Source: Hemiscyllium ocellatum
Lineage: Eukaryota
Direction of reading: 5' to 3'
DNA: 64,000 bases
Assembly (NCBI RefSeq): GCF_020745735.1
Contig: NC_083435.1
Coordinates: forward strand, 25,047,231-25,111,230
A program made the position numbers and the translations under genes. The notes below the pieces were generated by a model. The model saw only the letters and a list, made by a program, of their open reading frames with translations, was not told the DNA's origin and made no database searches. Position 1 is the stretch's first letter, and each line of letters begins with the position of its first letter. This document shows positions 17,138 to 63,495 of this stretch, one piece after another.

Positions 17138-17317
17138 TCAGCATATTCCCAGTTTTCTGTGTTGATCCATGTCCAATTTGATGAGATAATATTGAATATG
17201 AATAATTTTGTTGAGTGCACTAATCAAAACACGTTTTGAAGGAACCATATAAATGCTGCATGACCAACATATAATGGATGAGTAACTCCAGTTGGCTGGA
17301 TCCATCATTTCAGTTTC
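17138..17317 (-). CDS. Candidate terminal exon J (59 aa ETEMMDPANWSYSSII...HIQYYLIKLD...GIC*)
   Basis: gctttgttctgtttaag|GAA, phase 0, 170-nt intron from exon I; contains IQYYLI. Competes with 16855-16902. Confidence 0.35.
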   Translation of the reverse strand, partial: ETEMMDPANWSYSSIICWSCSIYMVPSKRVLISALNKIIHIQYYLIKLDMDQHRKLGIC

Positions 17318-20300
17318 CTTAAACAGAACAAAGCTTTTCCTGAAATGAATGCCAGCTTGCACCTACTTTCCAACTGCCAGTTACCACCTTCTGCAGATGC
17401 CAATTAGACAGCAATCTTTAATTGGAACCAGGTCATATTTGTTAAAGTAAATGCTACACAAGAAGGGCACTGTCTCTGTTCTCTTACCTCATCCTTTGAT
17501 GCACTTTCAGGTATAGGGTAACGTTTCACTGAGAATTGAATGTGACAAAAGTACAAGTAATTAGCTTTATGTCTCAATCCCATGAGGAAACAGTCTCAAA
17601 CATTTGTGTAAAATCATTTATCCATTAAATTTGCACTGATACCGTACCAATTTTAAAGAACACGTCAGGAGTTTGGTTCAGAATATTTGCAGTTTAACTG
17701 CCCAAGGTCTTGTTCAAGCGGTGACTCAGTGGTTAGCACTGCTGCCTCACAGCACCAGGGACCCAGGTTCGATTCCTACCTCAGGCAAATGTCTGTATGG
17801 AGTTTGCACATTCTCCCCGTGTCTGCTTGGGTTTCTTCCCACAATCCAAAGATGTGCAGGTTAGGTGAATTGGCCAGGCTAAATTGCCCGTAATGATAGG
17901 TGCATTGGTCAGAGGGAAACGGGTCTGGGTGGGTAACTCTTCGGAAGGTGAGTGTGGACTTGTTGGGGCGAAGGACCTATTTTCATTCTGTAGGGAATCT
18001 AATCTAAAGTTTTCCTGCAGAGTTGCAGATAAGTGGGATTAATTGGGCAGTTCTTTGAAAGTGCTAGCACTGGTATAATGACCTGAATGGCCTCATTCTG
18101 TGTGATATCATTCTATGACAGGTGCAAGATCCTGACAGCATAAATGCCAAGGGACAGGTTATCTTCTTGGGTATATATGCATGTTCTTAATAGGCGTGGT
18201 ATCAAAATCCTGACTAATGAATTGAGCAATGTGATGGGAGTATTATTGTCACAAGAAAGGCAGTATGGTGGCTCAGTGGTCAGCACTGCTGCCTCATGGC
18301 CCCAGGTTCAATTCTAGCCTCGGACGACTGTCTGTTTGGAGTTTGCACATTCTCCCCCTGTCTGTGTGGGTTTCCTCTGGGTGCTCCAGTTTCCTCCCAC
18401 AGTCCAAAGATGAAAATGACACAACACTAAGTTATAGTCCAACAGGTTTAATTGGAAGCACTAGCTCTCGGAGCTACTCTGAAAGCTAGTGTGCTTCCTG
18501 TTGGACTATAACCTGGTGTTGTGTGATTTTTAACTTTGTCCACCCCAGTCCAACACCGGCATCTCCAAATCAGTCCAAAGATGTGCAGTTTATGTGAATG
18601 GGCCATGCTAAATTGCTCGTAGTCTTTGGTGCATTAGTCAGGGATAAATGTAGGGGAATGGGTCTGGGTGGGTTGCTCTTCGGAGGGTCGGTGTGGACTT
18701 GTTGGGCCGAAGGGCCTATTTCTGTACTGCAGGGAATCTAATCTTTTAAAAAAAAACGGATGCCACAATTAGCTCCGGGTGATGGTTAATAAAAAGGCGG
18801 TCCTGTTGACATTGAATGCATTATGAAATGAATTTAATTCCACAAGGAGGTATCAGTTAAACTTGGCCAGTTTTGAAGTGGTAATGACAGTGGCGCTGTT
18901 AGCGTGCACTATCGTCATCATGACTGCACTGCCACTGACATTATCGTCAGCAGATGGTACATGAGTTACCAGGATGTCGCTGGGTATAGTGGGTTTGGGT
19001 TATAAAGGAAGGCTGGATAGGCTGGGACCTTTCTCACAAGGATGTAGGAAGTTGAGAGGTGACCTGATAGAAATTTATAAAATAATGTGAGGCATAGGTA
19101 GAGTTGATGGTAGTTGGCTTTTCCCTAAGATGGGGCATATGTTTAAGGTTAGAGCAGAGGGATTTTAAACAAAGGCATGAGGCGATTTTGGTTTCTCACA
19201 GTGGGTGGTTCATGTGTGGAATGCACATCATGAGGAAGTGGTGGATGTGTAAACAATTCCAATGTTTAAAAGACATTTGGATAGATACATGAATAGAAAT
19301 GGTTTGGAGGGATGTGGGCCAGGTGGCACTAGTGTTTAGTTTGGGATTACCATCGGCATGGACTGGTTGGCTGTATGACTCTATGTGCTGAATAATGTGG
19401 AGACCCAGAAGTTGCTGCTGTAGGGATTCAGTTTCACTCCAGGGACGTGGGGCTTAAAATACACCTTCTTTGAAGAGAAATGACCCAGCTTTCACTTGGA
19501 AATAACTTAATTGCTGACGCTGAAGAGACTTTATTTTTTGGGGTAATCTCAAATTACTCCAGAATGAGAAAAGAAAATCACCGAATCCTTGCAGTGTGGA
19601 AAAAAGCCCAATAGGTCCACACCAACCCTCTGAAGAGTATCCCATCCTTTGAGGGATGATAGATATAGGACAGATGTCAGAGATAAATTCTTTACTCAGA
19701 GAGCAGTAAGGACATGGAATGTCCTGCCTGGAACTGCAGTAGGCTCACCAACTTTAAGAGTACTTAAGTGGTTATTGGACAATCATGGAATATTGCAGGT
19801 TAGCTGGGCTTCAGATTGGTGCAATATCAAAGGCCAAAGGGCCTGGACTGCACTGTAAGGTCCTATCTTCACCAAGACCCATCCCCCCAATATATGACTT
19901 TATACTTCCACCATCTAATGCACCTAACCTACACATGCCTGAACACTATGGGTCAATTTAGCATTCTACCTGAACCTGCACATCTTTGAATTGTAGGAGA
20001 AAACTGCAGCACCCAGAGGGGGGCTAGGGCAGACACGGGGAGAACAGACAGTTCTCCACACAGACAGTTGCCTGAGGCTGGAAACGAACCCAGGTCCCTG
20101 GTGCCATGAGGCAGCAGTGTAAACCACTGAGCCACCATGCTGCCCTGCACATGCTCAAATGATTTTTTTTAAAAAGTGTATCCTTATTTTATCAATTTTT
20201 AAAATCGTAGATGAAGAGATTCTTAACTTAAATGTCAACATTGCCGGCTGAGAGAATACTTCAAATGGAATAGTTGATTAAGTTGCTTGCTGACATCACC

Positions 20301-23300
20301 ACTGCAGCAAGGTTACAGATCACTTTAACTTAGCTCTATATTCAAATGCAAATGGGAAAATATGCAAATTGCACCACAGAGATTGATACATCTGGGCAAA
20401 TATTTCAAAGGGAGCTAAACAGGAGTTAGTGATTTGTATGATAACAGTAACCAGCATCAGTAATGGGATCTTTAGACAAGACCGTAGCAGATCTCCATTA
20501 CCAGCACTGTCACTTCAGTCTCCTGTTGCTTTACATCTCTCTCTGAGTGGTACCAGCAAGGAAGGTCAAATTGTATCCGGTTTCTGCTCTGGCAAATAGG
20601 GATTGAAGCTTGTCTTCTTGGGAAGATATCAGCAATATCTAATCATTCAGCATTTCACTCCACTGACTCTGGGATACTGCCTGTTTCACCCACAACAAAA
20701 TCCTGCACCAATAAATAGGTAGTTATTGCCATCAGAGACAGCAAAACCATATTGAACTAGTCACTGTTTGCCTCAGTCTCTTGAGGTTACAAGATATAAA
20801 AAAACCATGCAGCTGCCCCAAAATATATATTTTCTTGTTAGGTACCTGTTACGTTAAGCTCGTCATATCCATAATCATGCCTGCAAAAGGAGGGGAAGAT
20901 TTTATAACCATCAGAATAAAATACACATCAAGGAATGAAAAGTTCTAAGATGATTGTCAGCATCTAGAATGTTGTACTTAAACAAAAAAGCCTCAGAAAC
21001 TCAGGCCATGTGTTCCAAAGAAAAAAATAACACCTTCAGCCTTTCCAACCAGTCACTGTGCTCCATTTTATTTCAATAAAGCCGCATTTTATCAGTCTTG
21101 TTATGGACCAGACCAAACCCCCTCAAAATATATTAAGAAGATGGCCTAGACGCTAACCTTTTCTTAATTTAAAGGTAAATTTAAGGTGTTGTGTTCCAGA
21201 TGCAATTCAACTGGTCAAACTATCAGATTTGAAGTAAAACACACTTTATTCATATAGGATAATTAAAATACAACCAAAGAAAAAAATAAAGAAAAGAATC
21301 AGCTTACCTGTAACTCTATCAAAATGCTTAACCAAATAATAGATACGGTATATATTACTAATTAACTGTTCCAATATATTAACATCCCATAAAGACCCCC
21401 TTTACAAAGGCAAATTTAAAAAGTAAGTTTGATTAGTATGTAACTCTAACAGCAGGAACATAACGCTAGCTTTTCACTGTAACAGGGAGAGGGAAAAAAA
21501 AAAGCAGCATCCACATCTTCATGAGCCCAGCAGCAACTTCTACTGAAATGATAAGCCCTGGTTCTAGAGGAGTTTAACCCCCCAATCATTGAACATCCAT
21601 CTTTACTGAAAGGACCAATCAAAAGTTTTGCTCTGTCTTGTCACTCTGTCCTAGTAACTTGAAAGCAAGAAAAGACAAACAAAATCTATTTGATCCATCC
21701 AACTGATCACCCCTTTTGATGACATCACAGCCCCACTGGTCCAACATCTCAGATTATTGCTGCTTCTATTGTTCCAACTTTAAAACAAAACCCAAGGCCT
21801 CACAAACTGCTTAATCTGGTGGTTCTGCGTAGACTGCTTGATGTATGTGCCTTGAAACCTCTCAGAAAGAAACAGGACAAACTACACCTCATAAAGCCAT
21901 AGCATCGACACAACCTTCATATTTTGTTTGCAGAACAGACCATAGTCATATAGTGTAGCATAGTCATTGCTGTTACTTGTAATTATGAAAATGCTGATGA
22001 ATCTGAAGATGTGCAAATTAATACCCTAGGATGGCTTTACAAGAGTTACTTGCACTTCATTGAGATATCTTGGCACATTGATAGTTCAACAGGCTGTCAA
22101 CAATGTGAAAACAAATACTCCCTGCTTTGCTGTCACACAGTGCAACACTGTAGAAACTATGAGGTAGATTTTGACTGAGACAGCTCATGATATTCCAGGA
22201 TCTTTCAGGATAGGTTCAGGGGTGCAAAATTGGCTCCCTGAATCTCCTGACCTAACAACAACACATGCACTGTAAGGCTTGCTTGCTGAAAGGTAAGTAG
22301 GAATAGGCATTAAATGCTGGTCTTGCCAAAGATCCTTATATCCCCTTGAATTAAAAAAGAAATGCTAACACAACTTGTTTCACATTCACGTTTACAAAGG
22401 AGATTAAACCATCTGGATTTGTGGAATTAAGAATCAAGGAATAGTGTTGAAATTGCATTTAAAAATTGGAAATGAAGCAATAATCTGAGATGTTGGACCA
22501 GTGGGGCTGTGTTGTCATCAAAAGGGGTGATCAGTTGGATGGATCAAATAGATTTTGTTTGTCTCTTCTGGCTTTCAAGTTACTAGGAGAAAGTGAGGTC
22601 TGCAGATGCTGGAGATCAGAGCTGAAAATGTGTTGCTGAAAAAGCGCAGCAGGTCAGGTAGCATCCAAGGAACAGGAAATTCGACGATTCGGGCAGATTC
22701 CTGATGAAGGGCTTATGCCCGAAACGTCGAATTTCCTGTTCCTTGGATGCTGCCTGACCTGCTGCGCTTTTCCAGCAACACATTTTCAGTTCAAGTTACT
22801 AGGACAGAGTGACAATACAGAGCAAAACTTTTGATTGATACTTTCAGTAAAGATGGATGTTCAATTATCTACAATGAGTCAGGTGTGTCAGAGAAGACCT
22901 CTCAACTTATATGCAAACAACATATGCTTGGGTCCATGGCTAGAAAGTGAGAGAAATTGCCGTCCCTCAGGATGAGAATGCCTCTTACCCTGGGCACAAA
23001 TCTTTGTGTGGAATTTTCTTTTAACCACAGGCAGAATGGGGACTACAGATCTGACTGATGAGGAAATTTTCTCCCTCTCTTTCTTAATCTCCTACCATGA
23101 GCTTGTCGGAAAAGTTTTGTCAACAGATAATCAATCCGTTTGGTGAAATTATGACAGGTCTCGCATTGCCGCCAGATCTTGAAGTGGCACTTGAGCTTGG
23201 AGTTTCTGATCCAGATATACGGACTTTTATCATTGCAACAGCTCCCACCTCTTCTAATTCTGAGTTGCAAATTTTCGACTCCGGTCCAGTACAAGCATTG

Positions 23301-26300
23301 TAATGTGTTAATTCATTACAACTCCTGAGAATTCTTTCAAAGCAGCTTGAGAACCACTTGTTTACTTTGGTTCCACATGAACATGGAACTTGTTTCTGGG
23401 AGCATTTCAAAAATATACTTTATTCATAAAATAATTTGATGGTCTGTACAGTTGGATATGCCATACATATGGAAACATTCCATTTCTTTGCATACCGAAA
23501 CAGAGTAATCGTTCCTATTTACAGGTCTGTACAATTACATTTTTTAGCTGAGGCGTCAGCAGAGCCCAAGTGACTGCATGGGCCCTCTGATCTTCTTTAG
23601 GCAGACAGATGTTACACGGTGGTCTTTCCCCACCGCGCCTTGGCGGCAGTTGCCCCAAGCTTCAGCGCGTCCCTCAACACGTAGTCCTGGACCTTGGAAT
23701 GTGCCAGTCTGCAACACTCAGTCGGGGTCAACTCCTTCAGCTGGAAGATCAACAGGTTTCGGACCGCCCAGAGAGCGTCCTTCACCGAGTTGATGATCCT
23801 CCAGGCACAGTTGATGTACGTCTCGGTGTGCGTCCCAGGGAACAGGCCGTAGAGCACGGAGTCCCGCGTCACGGCGCTGCTCGGGACGAACCTCGACAAA
23901 TACCACTGCATTCCTCTCCAGACTTCCTCTGTGTAGGCACATTCCCGAAGGAGGTGTGTGACGGTCTCGTCCCCCCCGCAGCCGCTTCGAGGGCAGCGTG
24001 CGGTGCGGCTGAGAGTCCGGGCGTGCATAAAGGATCTCACAGGTAGAGCCCTTCTCACCACCAGTCTGCTCAGGGAACCGCCTGATAGCATCCGCCTTCT
24101 CCTTTTACCAAAGGGTCTCAAGGACACTACGTGCTGACCACTTCCTGATGGACTTGTGGTCAAAAGGTGTTTTTCTTCATAAACTTCTCCACGAAGGACA
24201 GGTGGTACGGAACGGCCCAACTACTCGGAGTGTTCCACGGCAGCGAGGCTAGGCCCATCCTTCGCAACACCGGGGACAGGTAGAATCTCAGTACGTAGTG
24301 ACACTTGGTGTTTGCGTACCGGGTATCCACGCACAGCTTGATGCAGCCACACACAAAGGTGGCCATCAGGGCGAGGGTGGCATTGGGTGTATTTTTTCCC
24401 CCGTTGCCCAGATCTTTGTACAGTGAGTCCCTTCAGACCCGGTCCATCTTTGAACTCCATATAAACTGGAAGATGGCCCGGGTGACTGCAGTGGCGCAGG
24501 TTCTGGGAATAGGCCAGAACTGTGCCACGTACAACAGCAATGACAGTGCCTCACACCTGATGACCAGGTTTTTTCCCGCGATGGAGAGTGACCGTAGCTT
24601 CCATCTGCCCAGTTTCTACCTCACTCTGCTGATACGCTCCTCCCAAGACTTGGCGCACGCCCCAGCCTCCCCGAACCAAATACCCAGCACCTTCAGGTGG
24701 TCGGTCCTGACGGTGAAGGGGATCGAGGATTGGTCGGCCCAGTTCCCGAAGAGCATGGCCTCGCTCTTGCCTCGGTTTACCTTGGCCCCCGAGGCCCGTT
24801 CGAACTGGTCACAAATGCACATGAGTCTGCGCACGGACAGCGGATCCGAGCAGAAAACGGCGATGTCATCCATGTACAGGGAGGCCTTAACCTGCAGGCC
24901 CCCGCTGCCCGGAATAGTCACCCCTCTCAGGCTCGCATCCTTCCTGATGGACTCGGCAAATGGCTCTATGCAGCACACAAACAAGGCAGGAGAGAGAGGG
25001 CAGCCCTGCCTGACTCCAGATCTTACAGGGAAGCTATCTGATTCCCACCCATTGATTAAGACTGCACTGACGATGTTGGTGTAGAGCAGTCTGATCCAAT
25101 TGCAGATTCCCTCCCCAAAGCCCATTTTGAAGAGAACATCTCTCATATACCTGTGTGATATCCTGTCAAAGGCTTTCTCCTGGTCCAGGCTGATCAGGCA
25201 GGCGTCCAACCCTATGTCCTGCACGTAGGCGATCATATCCCTGAGGAGTGCGAGACTCTCAGCGATCTTCCTGCCCGGCACAGCACAGGTTTGGTCGGGG
25301 TGAATCACCGACCCCAGAGCAGACCTGACCCGGTTGGCAATTACCTTTGACAGAATTTTGTAATCCGCATTCAACAGTGTGATTGGTCTCCAATTTTTGA
25401 ATTCCTCCCTCTCCCCCTTCCACTTGTAGATGAGGGTGATGATGCCTTTCCTCATGGATTCGCTCATGGTACCCGCCTGATGCATACTGACATACACCTC
25501 CAGCAGGTCCTGGCCAATCAAGTCCCACAGACCGGAATGGAGCTCGACCGGTAAGCCGTCGCTTCCGGGAGTTTTATTCTTTTCGAAGGACTCGAGGGCC
25601 TTGGTCAGTTCATCCAGAGATAGCAACTGGTACAGCCTCTCGCGTGTTCTGTCGTCTAAGACCTCCGTGATAGACGACAGGAACGACTGGGAGGCCGCGC
25701 TGTCGGTCGGCTTCGCGTCATACAGACTGGCATAGAAGGATTTACTGATCCTCATGACGTCAGCCTGAGATGACGTTATCGAGCCGTCTTCTTCCTTCAG
25801 GCTGCTGAGCACAGAGCTCTCTTTGTGCACCTTCTGGAAGAAGAAACATGAGCACGTCTCGTCCTGCTCCACCGAGCGGACCCTGGACCGGAAGATTATC
25901 TTGGAAGCCTCCGAGGCAAAGAGCGAGGCTTGCTGTCCCTTCACCTCCTTGAGGTCCTCCGTGACATCGACCCCCATCGTCTGCAGCAGGAGCAGGTTCT
26001 GCATACTTTCCTGGAGCTGGGACAGTTTTCCCCGCCTCTCTCTCGCCTCCTGAACACCTTTGAGGATGAAAAACCTATTGGTGTTCCCTTTAACTGTTTC
26101 CCACCAGTCTGCTGGGGACTCAAAGAGGGGCTTCACGGTTCTCCAACCTGCGTAGTCCCCTTGAGCTCCTCAATGTTTCTTGGGGTCAACATCTTTTTGT
26201 GTTCAGCTTCCACGTTCTCTTACCCGCCCGCTGCTCGTCCTGTAGGTGACAGTCGGCCAGCAGGAGGCAAAGGTCAGAGAAGAACACCGGCTTGTCATCG

Positions 26301-29300
26301 GTGGATCTGACCGAGACTGTTCGGATAGTTATACCTATACTTTTTTTTATTTCAAAAATATACTTTATTCATAAAATATGCATAGAATAATTTGATACAC
26401 TGTGCATTAGGTAATGCCATTCATATTTCCACATTTACATACACAGCTCCGAATTATCATTATTACATACAGATCAGTGCATTTCTCACTCATATATTCA
26501 GCTGAGGTGTCAGCAGAGCCCAAATGACTGCATGGGCCCCCTGCTTTTCTTTAGACAGGCAGATGTTAAACGGTGGTCTTTCCCCACCGCGCCTTGGCGG
26601 CAGCTGCCCCAAGCTTCAGCGCGTCCCTCAACACGTAGTCCTGGACCTTGGAATGTGCCAGTCTGCAACACTCAGTCGGGGTCAACTCCTTCAGCTGGAA
26701 GATCAACAGGTTTCGGACCGCCCAGAGAGCGTCCTTCACCGAGTTGATGATCCTCCAAGCGCAGTTGATGTTCGTCTCGGTGTACGTCCCGGGGAACAGG
26801 CCGTAGAGCACGGAGTCCCGCGTCACGGCGCTGCTCGGGACGATCCTCGACAAATACCACTGCATTCCTCTCCAGACTTCCTCTGCATAGGCACATTCCA
26901 GAAGGAGGTGTGTGACAGTCTCTTCCCCCCCGCAGCCGCTTCGAGGGCAGCGTGCGGTGCGGCTGAGAGTCTGGGCGTGCATAAACGATCTCACAGGTAG
27001 AGCCCTTCTCACCACCAGCCAAGCCATGTCTTGGTGCTTGTTGGAAAGTTCTGGCGATGAGGCATTCTGCCAAATTGCTTTGACAGTCTGCTCAGGGAAC
27101 CACTCAACAGGATCCGCCCTCTCCTTTTCCCGAAGGGTCTCGAGGACGCTACGTGCTGACCACTTCCTGATGGACTTGTGGTCAAAGGTGTTTTTCTTCA
27201 GAAATTTCTCCACGAAGGACAGGTGGTACGGAACGGTCCAACTACTTGGAGCGTTCCGCGGCAGCGAGGCCAGGCCCATCCTTCGCAACACCGGGGACAG
27301 GTAGAACCTCAGTACGTAGTGACACTTGGTGTTTGCGAACCGGGGATCCACACACAGCTTGATGCAGCCACACACAAAGGTGGCCATCAGGGTGAGGGTG
27401 GCATTGGGTGTATTTTTTCCCCCGTTGCCCAGATCTTTGTATAGTGAGTCCCTTCGGACCCGGTCCATCTTTGAACTCCATATGAACTGGAAGATGGCCC
27501 GGGCGACTGCAGCGGCGCAGGTTGGCAGGCGGAGGAAATGGAAGAGGAGGAATCAAAGGAGGCAGATGACTGGATCACAGTCAGAAATAGGAAGAGGAAG
27601 CCTGTCTCGGGCCCCAAAGCCACCCAGAGAAGGGGGAAACGACACCTCCAAGTCGAGGACACAGGCAGCTCTTCTGATGGTGAGGACGGGCGCAAGAAGG
27701 GTCGCCACCAGAGGAAGAGACAGAGCGCCCTGGGGAGAAAGGAGGGCAGCACCACCCAAGAAGGGAAAGACGATCCCTCTGTGGGGATGGGTAAAGGCCT
27801 CCCCCTACCCGGTGAGAACCAAGAGGTGTCCACCGGCCCACAGCTCCAGGTAACTGGGAGCAGCGGTCCTGTGACAGCCCCGCTGTCAGATGGAGAACTG
27901 GACGGTGCAGACCCTGGGCTTGACACAAAGACACCAGAGCGGGGAAATGGCTCCAGCGTGGAGCCGGACAGCTACCTCAGCCCTGGGATGGTCCAGCAGT
28001 TTGCCGTCACCACGGGGATGCACGCAGCTACCCCAGAGGAGCAAGACCAGCAGCAAATGGACACTATTAACCTTGTAAATTGTTAAAATGGGGTTTAAAG
28101 TTGCCAGCATCAATGTGCGTAGCATCAAATCGGCTACGCGATGTGTTTCAACGATGACCTTCCTGGCCAGCGTTAAAGCCGACCTCCTGTTTCTGCAGGA
28201 GTGTGGGATACCGCACCTCAGCAGCTACAGGAGATGGTCGAGCTTGTGGGCCCATGGGCAGTCAGTTTGGTCGGGAGGCAACGATAGCCGCGCCTCCGGC
28301 CTGGGTATTCTGTTGCGAGGAAGCAACTTCACCATCTCCGAGGTTAAAGAGGTGGTGGGCGGGCGCCTCCTCGTCGCCGACGTTATGTACAGGAATGCTC
28401 CCCTGAGACTGATCAATGTGTACGCCCCATTGGGTAAGAGTGAACGGTTGGCCGTCCTGCAGCAGCTTCCACTGTTGCTGGCTACGTCCAGGCCGGTCAT
28501 TCTGGCCGGAGACTTCAACTGTATCATTGATGCAGATGGACGATCCGGCGGGGGGGACAGTAAACTGGACGCCACGTCCAGAGCCCTGATGGACGCGGTA
28601 AAAGATGCCAAGCTGCACGACGTCTTCAGCACCCCTGCAGACGGAGCGCAGCGTAGATACACCTGGTCACGGGCAGACAGGTCTATCCGCTCAAGGATAG
28701 ATTACCTGTTTGTGTCCCGAACGCTCTCGGTCAGATCCACCGACGTCAAGCCGGTGTTCTTCTCTGACCACTGCCTCCTGCTGGCCGACTGTCACCTACA
28801 GGACGAGCAGCGGGCGGGTAAGGGAACGTGGAAGCTGAACACAAAGCTGTTGACCCCGGGAAACATCGAGGAGCTCAAGAGGGACTATGCAGGTTGGAGA
28901 ACCGTGAAGCCCCTCTTTGAGTCTCCAGCAGACTGGTGGGAAACAGTTAAAGGGAACATCAAGAGGTTCTTCATCCTCAAAGGTGTTCAGGAGGCGAGAG
29001 AGATGCGGGGAAAACTGTCCCAGCTCCAGGAAAGTATGCAGACCCTGCTCCTGCTGCAGATGATGGGGGTTGATGTCACAGAGGACCTCAAGGAGGTGAA
29101 GGGCCAGCAAGCCTCGCTCTTTGCCTCAGAGGCCTCCAAGATAATCTTCCGGTCCAGGGTCCGCTCGGTGGAGCAGGACGAGACGTGCTCACGTTTCTTC
29201 TTCCAGAAGGTGCACAAAGAGAGCTCTGTGCTCAGCAGCCTGAAGGAAGAAGACGGCTCGATAACGTCATCTCAGGCTGACGTCATGAGGATCAGTAAAT

Positions 29301-32300
29301 CCTTCTATGCCAGTCTGTATGACGCGAAGCCGACCGACAGCGCGGCCTCCCAGTCATTCCTGTCGTCTATCACGGAGGTCTTAGACGACAGAACACGCGA
29401 GAGGCTGGACCAGCCGCTATCTCTGGACGAGCTGACCAAGGCCCTCGAGTCCTTCAAAAAGAATAAAACTCCCGGAAGCGATGGCTTACCGGTCGAGCTC
29501 TATTCCGGTCTGTGGGACTTGATTAGCCACGACCTGCTGGAGGTGTATGTCAGTATGCTTCGGGCAGGTACCATGAGCGAATCCATGAGGAAAGGCATCA
29601 TCACCCTCATCTATAAGCGGAAGGGGGAGAGGGAGGAACTCAAAAATTGGAGACCGATCACACTGTTGAATGCAGATTACAAAATCCTGTCAAAGGTAAT
29701 TGCCAACCGGGTCAGGTCTGCTCTGGGGTCGGTGATTCACCCTGACCAAACCTGTGCTGTGCCAGGCAGGAAGATCGCTGAGAGTCTCGCACTCCTCAGG
29801 GATACGATCGCCTACGTGCAGGACAGAGGGTTGGACGCCTGCCTGATCAGCCTGGACCAGGAGAAAGCCTTTGACAGGATATCACACATGTATATGAGAG
29901 ATGTTCTCTCCAAAATGGGCTTTGGGGAGGGAATCTGCAATTGGATCAGACTGCTCTACACCAACATCGTCAGTGCAGTCTCAATCAATGGGTGGGAATC
30001 AGATAGCTTCCCAGTCAGATCTGGAGTCAGACAGGGCTGCCCTCTCTCTCCTGCCTTGTTTGTGTGCTGCATAGAGCCATTTGCCGAGTCCATCAGGAAG
30101 GATGCGAGCCTGAGAGGGGTGACTATTCCGGGCAGCGGGGGCCTGCAGGTTAAGGCCTCCCTGTACATGGATGACGTCGCCGTTTTCTGCTCGGATCCGC
30201 TGTCCGTGCGCAGACTCATGTGCATTTGTGACCAGTTCGAACGGGCCTCGGGGGCCAAGGTAAACCGAGGCAAGAGCGAGGCCATGCTCTTCGGGAACTG
30301 GGCCGACCAATCCTCGATCCCCTTCACCGTCAGGACCGACCACCTGAAGGTGCTGGGTATTTGGTTCAGGGGGGGCTGGGGCGTGCGCCAAGTCTTGGGA
30401 GGAGCGTATCAGTAAAGTGAGGCAGAAACTGGGCAGATGGAGGCTACGGTCGCTCTCCATCACGGGAAAAAACCTGGTCATCAGGTGTGAGGCACTGTCA
30501 TTGCTGTTGTACGTGGCACAGGTCTGGCCTATTCCTGGATAGTTATACCTATACTGTCCAGCAGTGGTCAGTATGTAGGTCTTTGGGAATGCCAACACAC
30601 CTTGGGTTTTTCAGTTCATCAGACCACACCACAGTTCGGATGTGGTTGTTTCCCTCTCCTCAGTGGGATCCAGGAAACCCATGCGGCAGCGTCCAAGCAT
30701 TGGTCAGCAATTCTGGTTAATTCCCAGAATTTGGGAAGGATTGGACTCATTGTCAACCCACCGCAATCACATGGTTGATAGAAGTCACCAAGCAATGAAT
30801 GCATTCCAGCATGTCACCTGGTGGCCACTATCTGTCACAGAAATCAATATTGACTTTCAGGCTGATGTTAATTACAGAAAGGACAGTTTTCAACAGGAAG
30901 TGTGTGTCTCGAACAACCTTTTTATCAATGCTGTAATGAGTGAAAATGGTTGACTCCTTAACGGAGATAGTTCCAACACTGTAGAAGTGATGAATAACTT
31001 TTTTAAAGGGACGACACCCCCAACCCCCAGTAATTACAGCGTCAATGAATAAGGTGCATATTACATTTGAGTCATTTCAGTAAGAGAAAATTTTGACTCA
31101 CTCTAAATCATTGCCTTCCACAATCGATTCCAGTAAAGATGATCCATTAGGAGCCTGGTCTAACTTTAACGTTGCGTATTGTATATTGGCTGATGAAGTT
31201 GTCTAATTAAACAGAAATGTTACGTTAGACTAAATTGACCATATTCTACGCTCTTTGGTTAAATAAAGTTCGTGTAAGTGACCAGCTTTTTCACCTTGAG
31301 ATTGAGAAAGGAAGCTTGTTAAAATGCAAGTGATTTTGAGACACTAATGGTCAAGAAATGCAACTAAACTTTAAAGGTGTAGATGAGCTCAATTAAGGGT
31401 TGGCACTGTGGCTCAGTGATTAGCACTGCTGCTTCACAACACCAGGACCCACATTTGATGCGACCCTCTGATGACTGCGTGGAGTTTGCACGTTCTCCCT
31501 GCGTGGGTTTTCTCTTGGTGCTCTGAGTTCTTCCCACAGTCCAAAGATGTGCAGGTTAGGGTGGATTGGCCATGCTAAATTGCCCCATAGTGTTCAGGGA
31601 TGTGCAGGTTAGGGTGGATTGGTCATGCTAAATTGCCCCATAGTGTTCAGGGATGTGCAGGGCAGGAGGATTAGCTATAGGGAATGCAGGGATAGGGTAG
31701 AGGGGATGGGTCTAGGTGAGATGCTCTTTGGAGAGTCAGTGTAGAGTTGATGGGCTGAATGGCCTGTTTCTGCACTGTAGGGATTATCTTCTAAGATCTG
31801 GGTGCATTTTTGCTGAAGCAGAAAGTTGGTGGAGGGATACAATAAAGAGATTTGACATTTAATTTTAAAAGGATATTGATTCTTGGCCCTGTGTCCCTTT
31901 CCTATTTTTGCCATGTCTCATCATCTTTAAGCAGAGTGTGCTGAGCATTTTATTTTCATGTCATGTCAATCTGGTTTGGGAGCTGTTCAGTTTGCTAACT
32001 TATCAAAGCCAGCCAATTTACACATGTCCTACGGTCTGCTATTGGCCCTGCAGAAAATCTCAATCTGAAATTTGCTGAAAAGTGTTTGGGTTCTTAAAAG
32101 GTTATGAATTTGAAAGGCAGCTTGATCCGGAACAACATGGATTAAGTCAAATCTATCAATGGTGAGAGATGTGCTTGTGAAATCATTGCAACTAAAAATC
32201 GCACATGTCTGGTTTGTTGATGAAGTATGCATTTTAGATGATTGCTTACCTGTCGGTTGGGTGCAGAACTTTGACAATCTGCAGGAACAAAATACAGTAG

Positions 32301-35300: not shown

Positions 35301-38300
35301 CTCCGGTTTCCTCCCACAGTCACAAAGATGGTGCGGGTCAGGTGAATTGGCCAGGATAAATTGCCCGTAGTGTTAGGTAAAGGGGTAAATGTAGGGATAT
35401 GGGTGGGTTGCGCTTCGGCGGGTCGGTGTGGACTTGTTGGGCTGAAGGGGCTGTTTCCACACTGTAAGTAATCACTCTAATCTCAAATCTAGACGAGCAG
35501 AGTGCTCCCAAATTTTACACATTACAGTGGATGTAAAAGCACAACAACAACTCTACTTCCTCAGAAGTCTAAGAAAATTTGACATATTGATAAAGATCCG
35601 CATAGATGTTTACAGATATGCCTATCTGGATACAACCCAACCTCAGCTATCTGAACATCAATTAATCGAATTTTGGATTGTCCGAACAAGATCTCAAGGC
35701 AAAAACGTAGCCTATTGTCCGAACACTCAGTTATCCGAGCAAAATAGTTGTTTTGTGCATCATAATGTAGTTCGACAACAACTCTGCCTAAGACCACAAG
35801 AAATTAGTGTCCTGAACATAGCCCAGTCCATCATGCAAACTCTAATCCATTCACTTCAACTGTGCTTCCTACTGTCTTGCAAAAGTAGTCAGCATACTCA
35901 ACACCCCCTCCCATCCCAGTTACTCAACACCCCCTCCCATCCCAGTTACTCAACACCCCCTCAACACCCCAGTTACTCAACACCCCCTCAACACCCCAGT
36001 TACTCAACACCCCCTCAACACCCCAGTTACTCAACATCCCCTCAACACCCCAGTTAGTCAACACCCCCTCCCATTCCAGTTACTCAACACCCCCTCCCAT
36101 CCCAGTTACTCAACACCCCCTCATCACCCCATTACTCAAAACTCCCTCAACACCCCAGTTACTCAATACCCCCTCCCACCCCTGTTACTCAACATCCCCT
36201 CCCACCCCCGTTACTCAACATCCCCTCAACATCCAAGTTACTCAACACCCCCTCCCACCCCCGTTACTCAACATCCCCTCAACACCCCAGTTACTAAATA
36301 ACCCCTCAACATCCCAGTTACTCAACATCCCCTCAACACCCCAGTTACTCAATACTCCCTCCCACCCCAGTTACTCAATACTCCCTCCCACCCCAGCTAT
36401 ACTCTCTTCCCCATTCTTCCAACAGGCAGAATGTATATAAAAGATCGTATACATAGATGAACAGATTCTAGAACAGTTTCTTGAGTGCTGTTATTAGACT
36501 TTGAATGGACTTCTTAAATGTTAATGTTGATCTCTCTCTGCACCTTCTCTGTGGCTGTAACACTTTGTTGTGTTACCCTGATGCACTTGTACAGTACGAT
36601 CTCCCTGTAAAGCATGTAAAGTGACACTTTTCACTATATCTCGATACATGTGATGGTAATAAATCAAACCAGCAAAAAACAAAACTCTCAAGGCATTATT
36701 TTGAATAAGAGCAGAAGAGTTATGTCTGGTGGCCTAACTAGTACTTTCCTGAACAAGCAACATTAAACTTTATCATTGTCAATTACTGCTGATGGGGCAC
36801 TGCCACATACAAATTTCTGTTTCGTACATTGTATCAATGGCTACACTTCAAGAGTTCCTCATTGGCTAGAAATCACTTCTGTAATTCGCACTGTAAATAA
36901 CATGAACGCATTGTTAGACACTGGAGCAAAGCTTTTCCATGTCACTATCACCTGAGAAGCTATGAAGGTTGTCTATCTCCAGTAGGTGTGCCGACAAATG
37001 GTAACAAAGATTGTCAACCTACAAAGGCATATGTCCTTCTAATTCATACGATTACTCATTAGCTATTCCAAACGTTTAATTAATCTTTAATGAGTTACTT
37101 GCCCATCACATTAGTTGTCGAGTTGCTGAAGGTCTTTAGGCTGTCAGAAGCAAAAATAAAAATGCTGTTGATTATAAACAGAGAATGCAAACAACTGCAC
37201 TTATTTCAACTTTACTTTTATAGATATGTTTAATCAACCCTCTGAGACATGGTAGGCCACTCCTCTGGAGCAAGTGGGACTTGGACATTCGTACAACTGG
37301 CTTCATATTAAAGTGGACAAACTGGGTAAAAGGTCAAATCAATCTGGACCTCATGACTGAGGCCTCCTCCCCCTCTGGAATTACTCCCATCCCCACTATG
37401 ATTACAAAGTTAGACCTTGTCCGAGGAATTCGAGAAGAAACCCGTCCATTCCATGGATAGTGGCCAATCTAGAGAACCTATCCAGGCAAATAAAATAGCT
37501 TATTTATTCCTGATCAACCACACCATCCTGCAGGGAAACACTGACAAAAAAAATTCCAATCCTAAAAAACACCATCCATTCATACGAATGACTGGGGCAA
37601 CTTTGTTTTACACAGAGTGGTTCATGTGTGGAATAAACTGTCAGGAGAAGTGATGGATACAGCTACAGTTACAACATTTCAAAGACATTTGGATAAGTAC
37701 ATGTATAAGGAAGGTTTGGAAGGATATGGGACAAATGCGTTGGGATATCTGGTCGGCATGGACCGAAGGGTCTGTTTCCATGCTGTACATCTCTATGACT
37801 CTAAGTGATAGAGTTTGGGAATGTGGTCGGCATAGGCTAGTTGGACCAAAGGGTCTGTTTCCATGCTGTGTGACTCTATGACTGCGAGATGGCAATGGAT
37901 GCACCAGGAGAAACCTTCACCTCCCCCACCAACAGAAGACAAGAGGTTCAGAGGGAAAACTAGTTTTGCATCCACCTCAATATTACTCCCCAGCAAATGG
38001 AATGTGGAGTAAACTTTGCTGTTCTTTAAGTCTCTGTCAAACTGCACCGATCCCCTCAGCATCCCGACCGGTAGGTCACTTGCACCTCACATGATTAAAC
38101 TCCCTAGTGTAGGGTAACTCAGCATACAATGTAAAACTAGGTGGAGGTGGGTACTGTGGATGCTGGAGATTAGAGTCAAGATTAGAGTGGTGCTGGAAAA
38201 GCATATCGGGTCAGGCAGCATCCGAGGAGCAGGGAAATCAACGTTTCGGGCAAAAGCCCTTCATCAAGAATGCTCGTGCTTCCTGACTCGGGTTAAAATC

Positions 38301-50300: not shown

Positions 50301-53300
50301 AGACCCTTTGATCCAACGCTAAACATAATCCCAAACGGAACTATTCCCACCTGCCTGCTCCTGGCCCATATCCCCCCCAAACCATTCCTATTCATCTAGT
50401 TAACTAAGTGTCTTTTAAATGTTATAACTGTGCCTATATCTACCACTTGCTCAGGAAGCTCACTCCACCCAGTGAATCACACTCTGCACAGAACATTTGT
50501 CCCTCGTGTCTTTTTTAAATCTCTCTCCTCTCACCTTAAAAATATTCCCCCAGTCTTGAAATCCCCCATCCAAGGGAAAAGACACCTACCATTAACTCTA
50601 TATATACCCCTCATGAGTATATATAAACCTCTAGAAGGCCACCTCTCAACCTCCTACGCTCCAGTGAAAGAAATCCCAGCCTATCCAGCCATTCTTTATC
50701 ACCTAAACCTTCCATATTCGGCAACTTCCTCGTAAATCTCTTCAGAACTCTCTCCAGCTTAATAATACCCTTCCTACAATTGGGAGTTAAAGATGTGAGG
50801 AATTTGTTTAGTTAGGTTCTGAGTCAGTTCCCTGTCATTTGTCTGCCACATGTGGGAAGAATATCTGAGTAAGCAGTTTGAGCTGTCCTTTTGAGGAACA
50901 GGTGTTGGCACCCCCTGCTGGCCATCGATAAGAAGTGAATTGAAGTTGTGCAGAAGTTAGATCACCAGGCTCGGTAGATTGATCAGCAACTGGAAGTAAA
51001 TCGGGCGTTTGCTGAGTGTAACAAACAAACTACAGAATTTGTGAAGTGAATCTGGTCCTTCCTCGTATCCCTTAGAGGATGCTTAGAGAATCAAGAGTCA
51101 TAGAGGTGTATAGTAGGGAAACAGACCCTTCGGTCCAATTCGTCCATGCTGACCAAATATCCCAACCCAATCTAGTCGCATTTGCCAGCACCTGGCCCAT
51201 ATCCCTCCAAACCCTTCCTATTCACATATCCATCCAGATGCCTTTTAAATGTTGCAATTGTACCAGCCTCCACCATTTTCTTTGGCAGCTCATTCCGCAC
51301 AGCCGTCACCCTCTGTGTGAAAAAATTGCCCCTTAAGTCCTTCTTATATCTTTCCCCTCTCACCCTAAACCTATGCCCTCTGGACTCCTCCAATCCAGGG
51401 AAAAGACTTTATCTATTTATCCTATCCATGCCCCTCATGATTTTATAGACCTCTGTCAGGTCACTTTCCCACATTAAACTCTATTTGCCACCTCTCAGCC
51501 CAGCTCTGTAGGTTATCTGTGTCCCTCTGTAACTTGCAACACCATTCAGCACTGCCCACACTTCCACTGAACTTAGGTTCATCGTCGAATTGTTAAGAGT
51601 GAAGAATGGCAGATCTCCAAGTATGGTCGGAGATACTAAAGAAGTATCTAAATAATAAAAGGTGACCTGAGTGGTCACCTAGTAGTTAGTAACGGATGTG
51701 GGATCCACAGTTCAGAAATAGTGTCAGAGGCCTACAGCACAGAGAAAGGCCCAAACTGTCCATCCACACTAACCCCATTTCCCTGCACTTGGCCCATATT
51801 CTTCTAATCCTTCCCTATCCATGTATTTGTCCAAATGCCTTTCAAATGTTGCTAATGTACCTGCCTCAACCACTTCCACTGGCAGCTCATTCCATACGTG
51901 TACCACCCTCTGTGTAAAAAAACTGGCCACTCAGGTTCACTTTTATTCTTTCCCCTCTAACGTAAAACTGAGGCCCTCGATTCCCCAAAACCTGTGAAAA
52001 AGACTGAGTGCATTCACCCAATCCATGCCTCTCATGATCTTATACACTTCTGTAAGATTCCCCCCTCCGTCTCCCACGCTCGAAAGAAAACAACTCCTAG
52101 CTTATCCAACCTGTCCCTATAACTCAGACCGTTGAGTCCTGGAAAACATTGTGAAGAAACACAGAGAGCAAAGGAAAGGAAAGGAAAGGTTTATGATGCA
52201 ACAGCAATAGTCAGTTTGCTTGCAGAGTTACCAAGTAAAGTATTACATGAAGATAATGAGAGACGATGTGAGGAAAATTATCTGAACAAATGGAAAGGTT
52301 AGGTGGAAAAGTAGTAGAACAGGAGCAAAGGAATCAGGTGAATGTGTTGTATGTGGACCAGTTTCTGATCCAATTTGAGAAGTATGCAGTGCATATAGTG
52401 ATCATGATGCGGCCAAACAGAATTTAAACGAAGTGAATGGAGAATGCATCAATTTGCAGCCCGATATGAAAGTTCTGTAACAAGTGGACAGAGGAAATTA
52501 AATCTCTGTGACTGACCATTTAATGTTATAGAGAAAAAAAATTATTATAGAATCCTTACAGTGTGGAAACAGGCCCTTCAGCCCAACTAGTCCACACTGA
52601 CCCTCTGAAGAGTAACCCACCCAGACCCATCCCCTATCCTATTACTCTACATTTACTGCCAACTAATGCACTAAGCCTACACACATCCCTGAACACTACA
52701 GGCATTTAGCACAGCCAATTCACCCTGACACGCTCACCTTTGGATTGTGGGAAGAAACCAGACCACCCGGAGAATGCCCACACAAACACAGGGAGAATGT
52801 GCAAACTCCACACAGACAGTCACCCAAGGCTGGAATAGAACCCAGTTCCCAGGCATTGTGAGGCAGCAGTACTAACCGCTGAGCCACCATGAAATCTCAG
52901 CTATCAATAGAGAAAGGAATAGTGCCTGAACTTGGGACTGTTCAGTCTGAGGGCAATGGTGATTATAGAGTAGGTTGGGAAAGTTAGAAAAGAATGCTCA
53001 GTGAGTACTGATGACTGGGGACCCCCAACTCCTTTTCCTGAGACATTGAAGCCCTCAGCACCTGTAAAACCTGCTCTTGCACCAATGATTCTGCGACTGC
53101 CAATCGCACAGAAATCATCTACACAACCCCACTTGCAGTAACACAGATAAGGGAAATTGCTAATAAGATTTTGTGTGGCTTTAAGAGGTTAGTTTGTTCC
53201 TTTTTTTTGAAAGAGAGGGTTTAAGGCAGAGGTATCGAGCTGTCTAGTTGGAAAGCCAGTAGAGTAAACAGCATGTGAGGCCTTGGGTATTTTTAAGGTT

Positions 53301-56300
53301 GGAACAATAGAAGCAGCCTGAATGGGTGTGTTCAAGCTCCCACAGAACCAGGAGTTTCAGTTTTAGCTTTCAGCAGTTGCTATTGGGGTGCTAAAGAAGA
53401 GAAAGCTATTTTTCCCTTCTCTTGGTTACAGCCATAAGCGGTGGGGGGGGGGGGGGGGGCGCGGGAGGTCTCTGCCTGTCACTGGAGTTACATGTGAGAC
53501 CATCTGTGTATGAATTTGCCTTTTACCAAAGGTGTGTTTATGCGATGTTGCTATATTGGAACAGTTAATTAATAATAGTTACTGTACGTATTGCTCTGTT
53601 AAGTTTTCCCAATAGAGTGATGTTATTCCAATTCCTTTTCTGTTTTGTTGCATTTTAACTGTGGTGGATGAATAAAGTGTGCTTTACTTTAAATCTGACA
53701 GTTTGACCAAATGAACTGCATCTGGAACGGAATACCTTACATTTACTTTTAAAATAAGAAAAAAGTTAGGGTCTGGACTACCTTCTGAGGATGTTGGGGC
53801 AGTTTGGTTTGATCCATCACAATTTCCACTTTTCAACCCACTGCAAATCCTTTTGAATTTTTTCTAAAAGCACTCATCAGCAAAGACTTTTATATGGCCT
53901 CGCTGATCGAGAAGTAAGGTTAATGCTAGTGTGTGTGACCCCTGTGATTCAGTCTGCTTTACCCACTGCTCACCGTGAAGAATTGGAAGATATGAAGGAG
54001 GCTACATTTACCGTGATACGTGAGAACAGAGGGGATCCAATAGATGGTTTAATAGGTGTAATCAAACAAAAGGGAGAGCCTCCGCTAAATATGCAGGTCG
54101 GTTATGGATTCATTTTGCTCATGTTTTTGGAGAAATGGATCATGCTAGGTTAACTGTACGCGATTATTCTAAATAGTTAAGATCTTTAGTAGTGCGCATC
54201 TTGGAATGGGGAAAGAAGATGGGTGAAAATGTTGACCCAGAGATGGTGCACATGATGAGATATGGACAGTATGGCGAATGGTTCGAGCTTGGGAGAAGGA
54301 CATTAAAGGGATGAGCAAAGGGAGTAAGAGTGCCAATCAGATACATCGACCTTAAGAATACAAATACAAATGCTCACACCACAATATCTCACAACCTTAA
54401 CATCTGCCAAACAGCAAAAAAGATACATGTCCTTACCTTTCTTTCTGCGTAACTTCACACAGTAGAGCACAAAAACGAACAAGAAAGCCACTTGCACCAG
54501 AGCACTGATCAACAGGAATGACCATAGGGTCATGGCACCTTTTGCTTTCGCTAAGAAGAAAGAGGCCAAAGTCAGAAAGCTACGCAGGAGGCCATTCAGC
54601 CCCTTTCATCCAGTCAACCATTTGGTTAGATCATGGCTGATCTAAACCTGAACTCAATCTGCTCAGCTATTTATGTACCCTGTTATAACACTGCCTTGTG
54701 ATATCCATCAACCCTGCCTTTGCAAGTTTCAGTGCTTTCAGTCTTTCCAAGGAGGGTTCCAGATTCCCACCCAGTTTCGCAACCAAATCTGCTATCTGTC
54801 GTCACTGTTTAATCTGATTTTGAGATCACGTTCCATCGTTCTTGATGCTCCCACGAAAAGAAACATTTTTCTCCCTTTTTATGAACTCAAAAACTGTGCG
54901 ACAGCTTAAACCCCAAGCTCCTGAACCACACTGGTGACTCAGGATTGTGATCTACCAAGGCTAACATATCCTTCCCGATTTACAACTGCATGCCTTACTC
55001 CAAATGTGGTTGGTGTCATTTCAGGCATTGGAGGGATATTCTCTCCCCTTTTGCATTCCGTAACCATGACGATTGCTTCCAATCACATATTTAAATTAAT
55101 TGTTATTCCTGCAACTTCAGAATACTTTTCTCAGTTAACTTTCAAAACGACAATCCGGTTTCTCTTCGGGAATACTGTGTGCAGTTCTGGTCACCCTGTC
55201 ACAGGAAGGATATTATTAAACTGGAGATGGTTCAAAAGGGATTTACAGGAATGTTCCCAGGTGTGGAAGGTTTGAGTTATAAAGAAAGGTGGGGTGGTCT
55301 GGGACTTTTTTTTTCCCCTGGCGTTTAGGACATTGAGAGGTGGCTTTACAGAGGTTTATATAATCATGAGGGGTCGAGATGGTAGGTGTCTATTCCCTAG
55401 GATAGGGGATTTCAGATTAGGGGGCATAGTTCAAAGGTGAGAGGAGACAGAGTTAAAAAAAAAGACATGAGGGGCAAAATTTTTATACAGTGTGTGGAAT
55501 GAACTTCCAGTGGAAGTGGATGTGGGTAGTGTTACAATGTTTGACGGACATTTACATAAGTACATGAATAAGAAATGCCTGGAAGGAAGTGGGCCTAGCG
55601 CAGGCAGGTGGGACTAATTTAGTTGAGGATTATGGTCATCATGGATTGGTTGGACCGAACGGTCAGCTTTCATGCTGTATGACTTTATGACTTGATGACT
55701 TTATTGCTTCCATTCACATATTTAATTAGCTGTTATTCTGCAATTTAAGGATTTTTCAGAATAATCTTGCAAGTTAATTTTCAAAATGGTAATCAGGCTG
55801 CTACGTAAAGTATAGAATTCTTGCTTGACAGTTATAATCTGGGACAGTGGATGATCCGGATCCTCGTGGCAGGATGAGATGAAAAGTTGCAAAAGGCTGA
55901 TCATATCTTCACAGCTAATTTAGAATAGAATCCCTACAGTGTGGAAGAAGGCCATTCAGCCCATTGAGTCCATGCTGAACTGCCAAAGAGCAGACCAATC
56001 CCTTACCCTGTCTGTCTAAACCTGCATTTCCCAAGATTAATCCACCTAATCTGCACATCCCTAGATACTACGGACAATTTCCCATGGCCAATACACCTAA
56101 CCTGCACATCTTTGGACTGTGGGAGGAAACCAGAGCACCCGGAGGAAACCCACTCAGACACAGGGAGAATGTGCAAACTCCACACAGAAGTTAATACTAA
56201 TCGTTGCAATCTGCTGGACTATAACCTGCTGTTGTGTGATTTTTAACTTTGCAAAAGTGAGGATTGCAGATGCTAGAAATCAGAGTCGAGATTAGAGTGG

Positions 56301-62221: not shown

Positions 62222-63495
62222 GTCAAAGAGATGTACAGCATGGAAACAGACCCTGAGGTCCAACTGGTCCATGCCGACCAGATATCCCAACCCAATCTAG
62301 TCCCATTTGCCAGCACATGGCCCATATCCCTCTTACCTTCCTATTCATGTACCCAACCAGATGCCTTTTGAATGCTGTAATTGTACCAACCTCCACCACA
62401 TCCTCTGGCAGCTCCTTCCATACACGTACCACCCTCTGTGTGAAAAAGTTGACCCTTAGGTCTCTTTTATATCTTTCCCTTCTCACCCTAAACTTATGCC
62501 CTTTAGTTCCAGACTCCCCCACCCCAGGGAAAAGACCTTGTCTATTTATCCTGTCCATGCCCCTCATAATTTTGTAAACCTCTATAAGGTCACCCCTCAG
62601 CCTCCGACGCTCCAGGGAAAACAGCCCCAGCCTGTTCAGTCTCTCCCTGTAGCTCAAACCCTCCAACCCTGGCAACATCCTTGTAAATCTTTTCTCAATC
62701 CTTTCAAGTTTCACGACATCTTTCCGATAGGAAGGAGACCAGAACTGCACAGAATATTCCAAAAGTGGCCTAACCAATGTCCTGTACAGCCGCAACATGA
62801 CCTCCCAACTCCTGTACTCAATGCTTTGACCAATAAAGGAATGCATATCAAATGCCTTCTTCACTATCCTATCTACCTGTGACTCTACTTTCAAGGAACT
62901 ATGAACCAGCATTCCACGGTCTCTTTGTTCAGCAACACTCTCTAGGACCTTACCATTAAGTGTATAAGTCCTGCTATGACTTGCTTTTCCAAAATGCAGC
63001 ACCTCACACTTATCTAAATTAAACTCCATCTGCCACTTCTCAGCCCATTGGCCTAAGTGATCAAGATCCTGTTGTAATCTGAGATAACCCTCTTCACTGT
63101 CCATCAAACCTCCAATTTTGGTGTCATCTGCAAACTTACTAACTATACCTTTTATGCTCACATCCAAATCATTTATATAAATGATGAAATGCAGTGGACC
63201 CAGCACTGATTCTTGTGACACTCCACTGGTCACAGGCCTCCAGTCTGAAAAACAACCCTCCACCACCGTCCTGTCTTCTACCTTTAAGCCAGTTCTGTAT
63301 CCAAATGGCTAGTTCTCCCTGTATTCCATGAGATCTAACCTTGCTAAACAGTATCCCATGAGGAATCTTGATGAACGCCTTACTGAATTCCATGTTGATC
63401 ATGTCCACCGCTCTACCCTAATAAATCCTCTTTGTTACTTCTTCAAAAAACTCAACCAAGTTTGTGAGACATGATTTCCCACGCACAAAGCCATA
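62222..63495 (-). mobile_element. CR1/HER1 LINE 3' fragment with an open RT frame (62223-63266)
   Basis: SGVSQESVLGP, FADDTK, YSVQFWSP, LERRRLRGDLIEVYK. Confidence 0.92.

Follow-up and report, generated by a model that had tools for sequence, protein, structure and literature searches.

An elasmobranch NCR3 (NKp30)-like receptor gene in Hemiscyllium ocellatum with a conserved micro-exon tail and predicted signalling motifs of its own

Can a shark relative of NKp30 signal through a cytoplasmic tail of its own, without an adaptor? The question is raised by a stretch of 64,000 nucleotides (nt) of the Hemiscyllium ocellatum genome (NCBI RefSeq assembly GCF_020745735.1, contig NC_083435.1, positions 25,047,231 to 25,111,230; hereafter the window), where a first-pass annotation had placed an NKp30-like receptor on the minus strand, followed by nine small exons encoding a tyrosine-bearing tail. 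To our knowledge, NKp30 is the one natural killer (NK)-cell receptor that can be traced all the way from sharks to humans; its mammalian form relies on adaptors that carry an immunoreceptor tyrosine-based activation motif (ITAM). We conclude that the window very probably holds an intact elasmobranch NCR3 (NKp30)-like gene encoding a type I receptor with a micro-exon tail, which would signal by itself with a net inhibitory or dual outcome.

The minus strand carries one intact 13-exon gene, running from 58164 to 16855 and predicted from the genomic sequence. Joined in silico, its exons (Table 1) give a complete ATG-to-TAG frame of 310 amino acids (aa), in which a signal peptide, a single variable-joining (V-J)-type immunoglobulin (Ig) domain, a 9-aa stalk, a 24-aa transmembrane (TM) helix, the stop-transfer sequence KLRRKK and a 150-aa cytoplasmic tail follow one another. 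The TM helix (residues 137-160) is devoid of Arg, Lys, Asp and Glu. The tail, which is Ser/Thr-rich and contains 24 acidic and 13 basic residues, is coded by ten micro-exons of 19-101 nt each (A-J). The TM exon and tail exons A-I all have an AG acceptor after a pyrimidine tract and, except for the GC of exon E, a GT donor, and their splice phases form an unbroken chain. In five of the tail exons (B, E, G, H and I) just one frame is open, and every time it is the frame demanded by the incoming phase; the first-pass annotation had made this point for B, E, H and I, and it extends to G. Its ten tail peptide pieces were all recovered on the minus strand where it had put them, and its nine exons do splice in frame after the TM exon with fitting sites and phases, a few boundaries being shifted by 1-2 bases. 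The leader exon and terminal exon J were located by tblastn with the sequences of relatives, and because exon J, unseen earlier, adds 15 residues and the TAG stop, a tail that had been put at 135 aa or more is 150 aa long. No second leader, V or TM exon of the NCR3-like family was found anywhere in the window; the attribution of these exons to the V-TM gene is thus upheld by the sole leader, V and TM exons upstream of them, and also by RefSeq models of orthologues that join them. Apart from this gene the window, whose composition is vertebrate-like (44.5% G+C, CpG observed/expected 0.38, zero N), contains repeats only.

The V exon was used as query in a profile-free search against 1.84 billion representative proteins, which returned shark and ray proteins bearing the same tail. 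The closest full model, XP_072406317.1 from C. punctatum, contains exons A-I in the predicted order, plus J. Its locus (L001), a positional orthologue, can be aligned collinearly with the window through exons and introns alike at about 91-93% identity; it keeps every splice site, the GC donor of exon E among them, and a conserved counterpart of exon 1 (L001 20087-20129). A second positional orthologue, LOC132206215 of Stegostoma tigrinum, corresponds to the tail exon for exon, and the lengths 114/19/38/41/44/38/29/98-101/35/41/48 recur there. The ray Mobula hypostoma has a related gene with all of these lengths but one (50 for 29); there the conservation is limited to peptides and exon lengths, as no nucleotide alignment to the ray locus was obtained. 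The first-pass annotation had named conserved exon sizes and tyrosines as the support to be sought in other sharks, and this is what C. punctatum and Stegostoma provide in full and the ray Mobula almost in full. Since nearly all exon lengths are equal in the sharks and in Mobula, the micro-exon tail predates the split between sharks and rays. Tail homologues are found in Carcharodon, Scyliorhinus, Heterodontus, Rhincodon and Mobula, and the tail-bearing elasmobranch models have 1 to 3 V domains. When a profile of the tail was run against the 150 best V-domain relatives, the only carriers were elasmobranch proteins already identified, and a Pfam scan of the tail matched zero families. The 13-exon chain, known from genomic sequence and predicted models, is thus a well-supported gene model.

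To which family does the ectodomain belong? A sequence search of the PDB placed four human NKp30 entries at the top, with E values of about 1e-10 over the whole domain, followed by TCR mu (3e-8). An AlphaFold2 model of the V exon (mean predicted local distance difference test score, pLDDT, 91.6) was then compared with known folds using Foldseek: NKp30 (3noi, 3pv6) occupied ranks 1-3 with TM-scores of 0.75-0.79, root-mean-square deviations (rmsd) of 2.2-2.6 Å and 32% identity, and SIRP-alpha D1 came next with an rmsd of 4.4-5.3 Å. Ten single-V matches were sampled for their names, and among them are NCR3 proteins of Callorhinchus, Ginglymostoma (QTT61898.1, a published nurse shark sequence), Protopterus, a frog and turtles. 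The named NCR3 proteins are 34-40% identical to the window domain and have in common with it the hallmarks GSYxW, E(Y/F)RGR, DAS, DSGxYYC and GxGTxLxV. The V exon ends in YGAGTQLTVR, so that the J-like G-x-G-T-x-L-x-V lies in the same exon; this is the non-rearranging V-J form, with no rearrangement signal. Because NKp30 is the best match by sequence as well as by fold, and because the hallmarks are those of the named NCR3 proteins, the ectodomain is best regarded, on sequence and modelled structure, as a member of the NCR3 family, which agrees with the initial description of an NKp30 relative; the claim is one of family and not of orthology to mammalian NCR3.

The NCR3-like family is expanded in sharks, where relatives carry 1-5 tandem V domains, and a credible though less probable reading is that the gene belongs to a separate, elasmobranch-specific V-J expansion that is not orthologous to NCR3 and merely has a common ancestor with NKp30 and SIRP-type V domains. 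Such an origin would be consistent with the identity of only 34-40% to tetrapod NCR3, with the position of SIRP-alpha D1 close behind NKp30 in the fold search, with the tandem-V relatives, some of which are named turtle-like or SIRP-beta-2-like by NCBI, and with the absence here of the TM arginine and short tail of NKp30. However, NKp30 ranks first both by sequence and by structure, its rmsd being well below that of SIRP, and the non-shark named matches among the ten sampled are all NCR3 or NCR3-like, as are those of a chimaera and the nurse shark. We therefore retain membership of the NCR3 family as the preferred assignment.

The tail of this NCR3-like receptor contains five tyrosines, and the own tyrosine motifs that had been predicted for it are indeed present: three of the five lie within conserved motifs, namely IYxPM (a YxxM motif), (I/V)QYAx(L/I) (an immunoreceptor tyrosine-based inhibitory motif, ITIM) and GY(D/E)EL, beneath an uncharged TM helix. 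When seven full-tail sequences are compared, the stretches IY.PMES.KTF.NS, QYA and DLEHD.GYDELN.T.KR stand out as the most conserved. The pattern (I/V)QY(A/T/S)x(L/I) occurs in every homologue possessing exon G, and IQYATL in the window fits the canonical ITIM. The conserved Tyr275 of GYDEL lies 30 residues past Tyr245 and is preceded at position -2 by Tyr, Phe or Asp, where a second inhibitory or switch motif would have Ile, Val, Leu, Ser or Thr. An ITAM is excluded, because 26 residues separate the two YxxL motifs (YATL and YDEL) and the ITAM spacing is 6-12. The sequences HDYGYDEL here and QDDGYDEL in the ray resemble a hemITAM, whose pattern is DEDGYxxL, but they lie in the C-terminal tail of a type I Ig receptor and thus fall outside that class. 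With regard to selection, the ratio of nonsynonymous to synonymous substitution rates (dN/dS) against C. punctatum is 0.48 for the leader and V domain and 0.51 for the tail, with few changes; against Stegostoma it is 0.25 for the V domain, 0.92 for the stalk and TM helix and 0.49 for the tail, this last value being based on 108 substitutions and departing from neutrality with a binomial p of 0.006.

From these features we infer that the receptor signals by itself and not via CD3-zeta or FcR-gamma, a route that is unlikely because the TM helix has no arginine. In the proposed mechanism, the V-J Ig domain would sit almost on the membrane, held by its 9-aa stalk, and ligand binding would lead Src-family kinases to phosphorylate Tyr209, Tyr245 and Tyr275. 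Tyr209, within YxxM, would be a docking site of the PI3K p85 type, whereas Tyr245 in the ITIM and Tyr275, with 30 residues between them, have a spacing that would suit the tandem SH2 domains of SHP-1 or SHP-2. On balance the outcome would be inhibitory or dual, in a design like that of BTLA or PD-1, and by this analogy an inhibitory or dual function is the most likely one. The tail may also be modular. Three blocks of exons have lengths divisible by three, namely D+E+F with 111 nt, E+F+G with 168 nt and G+H+I with 177 nt, and therefore in-frame skipping could drop individual motifs and would yield isoforms with different motif sets; one Heterodontus model, which splices exon D straight to exon H, displays such an in-frame loss of E+F+G.

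Several observations weigh against an intact, inhibitory or dual receptor. By its position -2, the Tyr275 motif fits neither a canonical ITIM nor an immunoreceptor tyrosine-based switch motif (ITSM); YxxM together with the hemITAM-like DxGYxxL is equally compatible with activation; the constraint on the tail is moderate; the gene models of the relatives in RefSeq are predictions, and the exon chain in H. ocellatum is predicted from genomic DNA; and a dead cassette exon has kept an intact acceptor 103 nt before exon D, the use of which would lead to a premature TAA. The main rival view of how the tail works is that it is activating, with YxxM and the acidic GY(D/E)EL recruiting PI3K, Syk or Src-family kinases and the ITIM having a modulating role only. 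YxxM does resemble the motifs of DAP10, CD28 and ICOS, GY(D/E)EL is hemITAM-like (DDGYDEL in the ray), both YxxM and D-x-G-Y-x-x-L are as strongly conserved as the ITIM, and the short tail of nurse shark NCR3 (QTT61898.1) likewise has a YxxM in NPLYADM. We nevertheless consider an activating tail the less likely case: an ITIM in every homologue with exon G, followed by a YxxL 30 residues downstream, is the classic SHP layout, and the known hemITAMs are situated in the N-terminal tails of type II lectin receptors.

The dead cassette raises the further question of whether the gene still produces its tail. In Stegostoma and Heterodontus a 42-nt cassette exon (..LLESD.LC.) precedes exon D, from which it is separated in Stegostoma by an 87-nt intron; in the ray the cassette measures 30 nt. 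Its donor was lost through a 27-nt deletion common to three hemiscylliid genomes. The 61-nt remnant contains a TAA in the window, and so do C. plagiosum and the Stegostoma intron; C. punctatum alone has GAA, and its model reads through as a 146-nt exon for this reason. This long exon D, the RefSeq form of C. punctatum, was rejected for the window as a read-through of the cassette remnant, which here encounters TAA. The position of the exon D acceptor is the start of exon D in the Heterodontus models, and the Carcharodon and Scyliorhinus proteins align at the exon D start (in protein alignments, not exon maps). Given that the acceptor is identical in four genomes and that the start matches in Heterodontus, the exon D predicted here represents the conserved form. 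That the gene is turning into a pseudogene in H. ocellatum, or yields mainly a protein truncated ahead of the tyrosine motifs by use of the cassette acceptor and its TAA, appears improbable: the acceptor does lie behind a strong pyrimidine tract, the cassette has lost its donor and the remnant holds the stop, but a TAA that C. plagiosum and the Stegostoma intron share is ordinary intron sequence, the exon D acceptor, identical in four species, is used after the 87-nt intron in the Stegostoma model, and the remaining frame is intact, with a tail dN/dS of about 0.5 and not 1. Finally, that the nine exons come from another transcript or are a chance AG...GT assembly is scarcely conceivable, for although short open AG...GT segments are plentiful in 37 kb and the chain was read from the genome, the C. 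punctatum, Stegostoma and Mobula models connect V and TM to these very exons, alike in length, phase, splice sites and order, a further leader or V exon is absent from the minus strand of the window, and five exons each have the single open frame required. The interpretation as an intact gene with a full tail is the one adopted in Table 1.

Some models and candidates at this locus deserve separate mention. The C. plagiosum isoform XP_043533719.1, in which a direct C-F junction shifts the frame, was judged an artefact: exon E is unmatched there, a run of N lies between D and F, and the truncated, frameshifted form is explained by an assembly gap (L004 30559-31058, in the D-F interval) situated where exon E is unmatched. 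An alternative last exon at 41309-41235 (-), containing TPYSAV (an ITSM), is unsupported; C. plagiosum has its acceptor AG but C. punctatum has lost it, its tyrosine is absent in Stegostoma, its identity is at intron level, and the candidate is probably due to chance. In C. punctatum, XP_072406317.1 has a first exon 17 kb upstream (L001 3001-3134) that adds 46 residues before the conserved Met; it looks like a 5' untranslated exon with an upstream ATG and not like real coding sequence. In Stegostoma, LOC132206215 (L002 1-1073) starts within a V exon, where an adjoining 165-aa 'NCR3-like' model ends, and the two are probably one two-V-domain gene split by annotation.

Table 1. Exons of the NCR3-like gene and the cassette remnant, in order of transcription (positions in the window)
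Feature	Position	Strand	Remarks
Exon 1, start codon and signal peptide (14 codons + 1 nt)	58164-58122	-	donor gtaagt, exit phase 1
Exon 2, single V-J-type Ig domain, 342 nt	56963-56622	-	phase 1-1; J-like YGAGTQLTV in same exon
Exon 3, 9-aa stalk, 24-aa uncharged TM helix and KLRRKK, 114 nt	54550-54437	-	equal length in Stegostoma and Mobula
Tail exon A, 19 nt	48850-48832	-	splice sites, phase, conserved length
Tail exon B, 38 nt	48229-48192	-	splice sites, phase, conserved length
Tail exon C, 41 nt	41963-41923	-	splice sites, phase, conserved length
Cassette-exon remnant (..LLESD.LC..)	39402-39301	-	intact acceptor, donor deleted, TAA on read-through to D
Tail exon D, 44 nt, SIYIPM (YxxM), Tyr209	39300-39257	-	acceptor tgtgttccaaag unchanged across four shark genomes
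Tail exon E, 38 nt, conserved LKTFSNS	37140-37103	-	GC donor gcaagt kept in C. punctatum and Stegostoma
Tail exon F, 29 nt	32278-32250	-	splice sites, phase, conserved length
Tail exon G, 101 nt, ITIM IQYATL, Tyr245	31202-31102	-	splice sites, phase, conservation
Tail exon H, 35 nt, HDYGYDELNVT, Tyr273 and Tyr275	20880-20846	-	0/35 nt differ from C. punctatum
Tail exon I, 41 nt	17528-17488	-	splice sites, phase, conserved length
Terminal coding exon J, 48 nt, 15 residues + TAG	16902-16855	-	tblastn with relatives

The G-H intron, which measures 10 kb here while its C. punctatum counterpart is 5.7 kb long and that of Stegostoma 0.7 kb, is packed with fragments of long interspersed nuclear elements (LINEs) on both strands (23600-30600), among them a 775-aa open reading frame (ORF) with endonuclease and reverse-transcriptase (RT) domains at 28088-30415 (+); further RT and zf-RVT ORFs occur on the minus strand of this intron. 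Upstream of the gene, a 347-aa ORF with a partial reverse-transcriptase domain (62223-63266, -) constitutes a LINE remnant. The E-F intron harbors a C-rich 26/53-nt tandem repeat array of about 19 copies (35895-36396), which is expanded in C. punctatum too (L001 43.9-45.1 kb).

How new is the tail? The first-pass annotation had called it hidden, which is true with respect to ORF finders, but it is already included in public RefSeq predictions (e.g. XP_072406317.1, LOC132206215), and for this reason the earlier estimate of novelty was too high. The tail is not new to databases; it is present, unnamed or misnamed, in the RefSeq models of at least six elasmobranchs (XP_072406317.1; LOC132206215; LOC121291130 in C. 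carcharias; LOC119975535 in S. canicula; XP_067865377/8 in H. francisci; LOC134346462 in M. hypostoma). The labels of these models, none of them functional, are "uncharacterized", "turtle-like" or "SIRP beta-2-like", and such automatic names mask one coherent family. Exact-protein look-ups for transcript contigs led to genome assemblies only. In full-text literature searches, whose coverage did not extend to Kinlein et al. 2021 and Flajnik et al. 2012, no long-tailed shark NCR3 was found to be described. The comparison has also exposed two model artefacts, the read-through exon of C. punctatum and the truncation of C. plagiosum, in whose assembly exon E is missing.

The elasmobranch branch with an uncharged TM helix, an ITIM and a YxxM is a testable candidate for the pre-adaptor signalling of the NKp30 family, and the long-tailed receptor may form an inhibitory/activating pairing with short-tailed shark NCR3 genes. 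More speculatively, and with considerable doubt, the ancestral NKp30-type receptor could have been a self-signalling, checkpoint-like molecule whose modular micro-exon tail (YxxM, ITIM, GY(D/E)EL) could be re-assorted by block skipping, tetrapods having later lost the tail and gained a TM arginine for ITAM adaptors. If this conjecture were true, the way in which the oldest conserved NK receptor first signalled would survive in elasmobranchs.

The gene can be compared with several known systems. In mammalian NKp30 the TM helix carries an arginine, the partner is CD3-zeta or FcR-gamma, and the short tail, devoid of signalling tyrosines, comes from one alternatively spliced exon; MHC linkage and a ligand of the B7H6 type are further traits of NCR3. 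The shark protein is like it in its single non-rearranging V-J Ig domain contained in one exon, its very short stalk and its type I topology, whereas it differs in its uncharged TM helix and in its 150-aa tail, for which ten micro-exons are used and in which three tyrosine motifs are conserved. The possible skipping of exon blocks in the shark tail nevertheless recalls the isoforms known for the human NKp30 tail. With the long-tailed elasmobranch group in RefSeq, the gene has in common the order, lengths and phases of the tail exons and, for C. punctatum and Stegostoma, collinear flanks, but some of those models hold the 42-nt (in the ray 30-nt) cassette exon of which the window has only a remnant. 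In the nurse shark, Kinlein et al. 2021 reportedly described an NCR3 family of eight subtypes (GenBank MT914154-MT914161). Nurse shark NCR3 QTT61898.1 belongs to the same V-J domain family (43% identity); it differs in its long stalk and in a 28-aa tail with a single NPLYADM and no micro-exon series. A tail assembled from a series of short exons, with alternative splicing that alters its ITIM content, is said to have been described for PECAM-1 by Kirschbaum et al. 1994. The resemblance lies in this short-exon construction, while PECAM-1 has six C2-type Ig domains, an unrelated sequence and other exon sizes. Closer in layout are BTLA and PD-1, which likewise combine one Ig domain and an uncharged TM helix with an ITIM followed by a second tyrosine motif some 25-30 residues on. 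BTLA also has an upstream tyrosine that binds Grb2/PI3K, to which the shark order Tyr209, Tyr245, Tyr275 is comparable. Unlike the shark receptor, BTLA and PD-1 take their tails from one or two exons; there is zero sequence similarity between the tails, and the third shark motif is not an ITSM. More generally, ITIM-bearing inhibitory receptors of the Ig superfamily recruit SHP-1, SHP-2 or SHIP once phosphorylated. Two features of this class, the motif [S/I/V/L]-x-Y-x-x-[I/V/L] and an uncharged TM helix, are both found in the shark protein.

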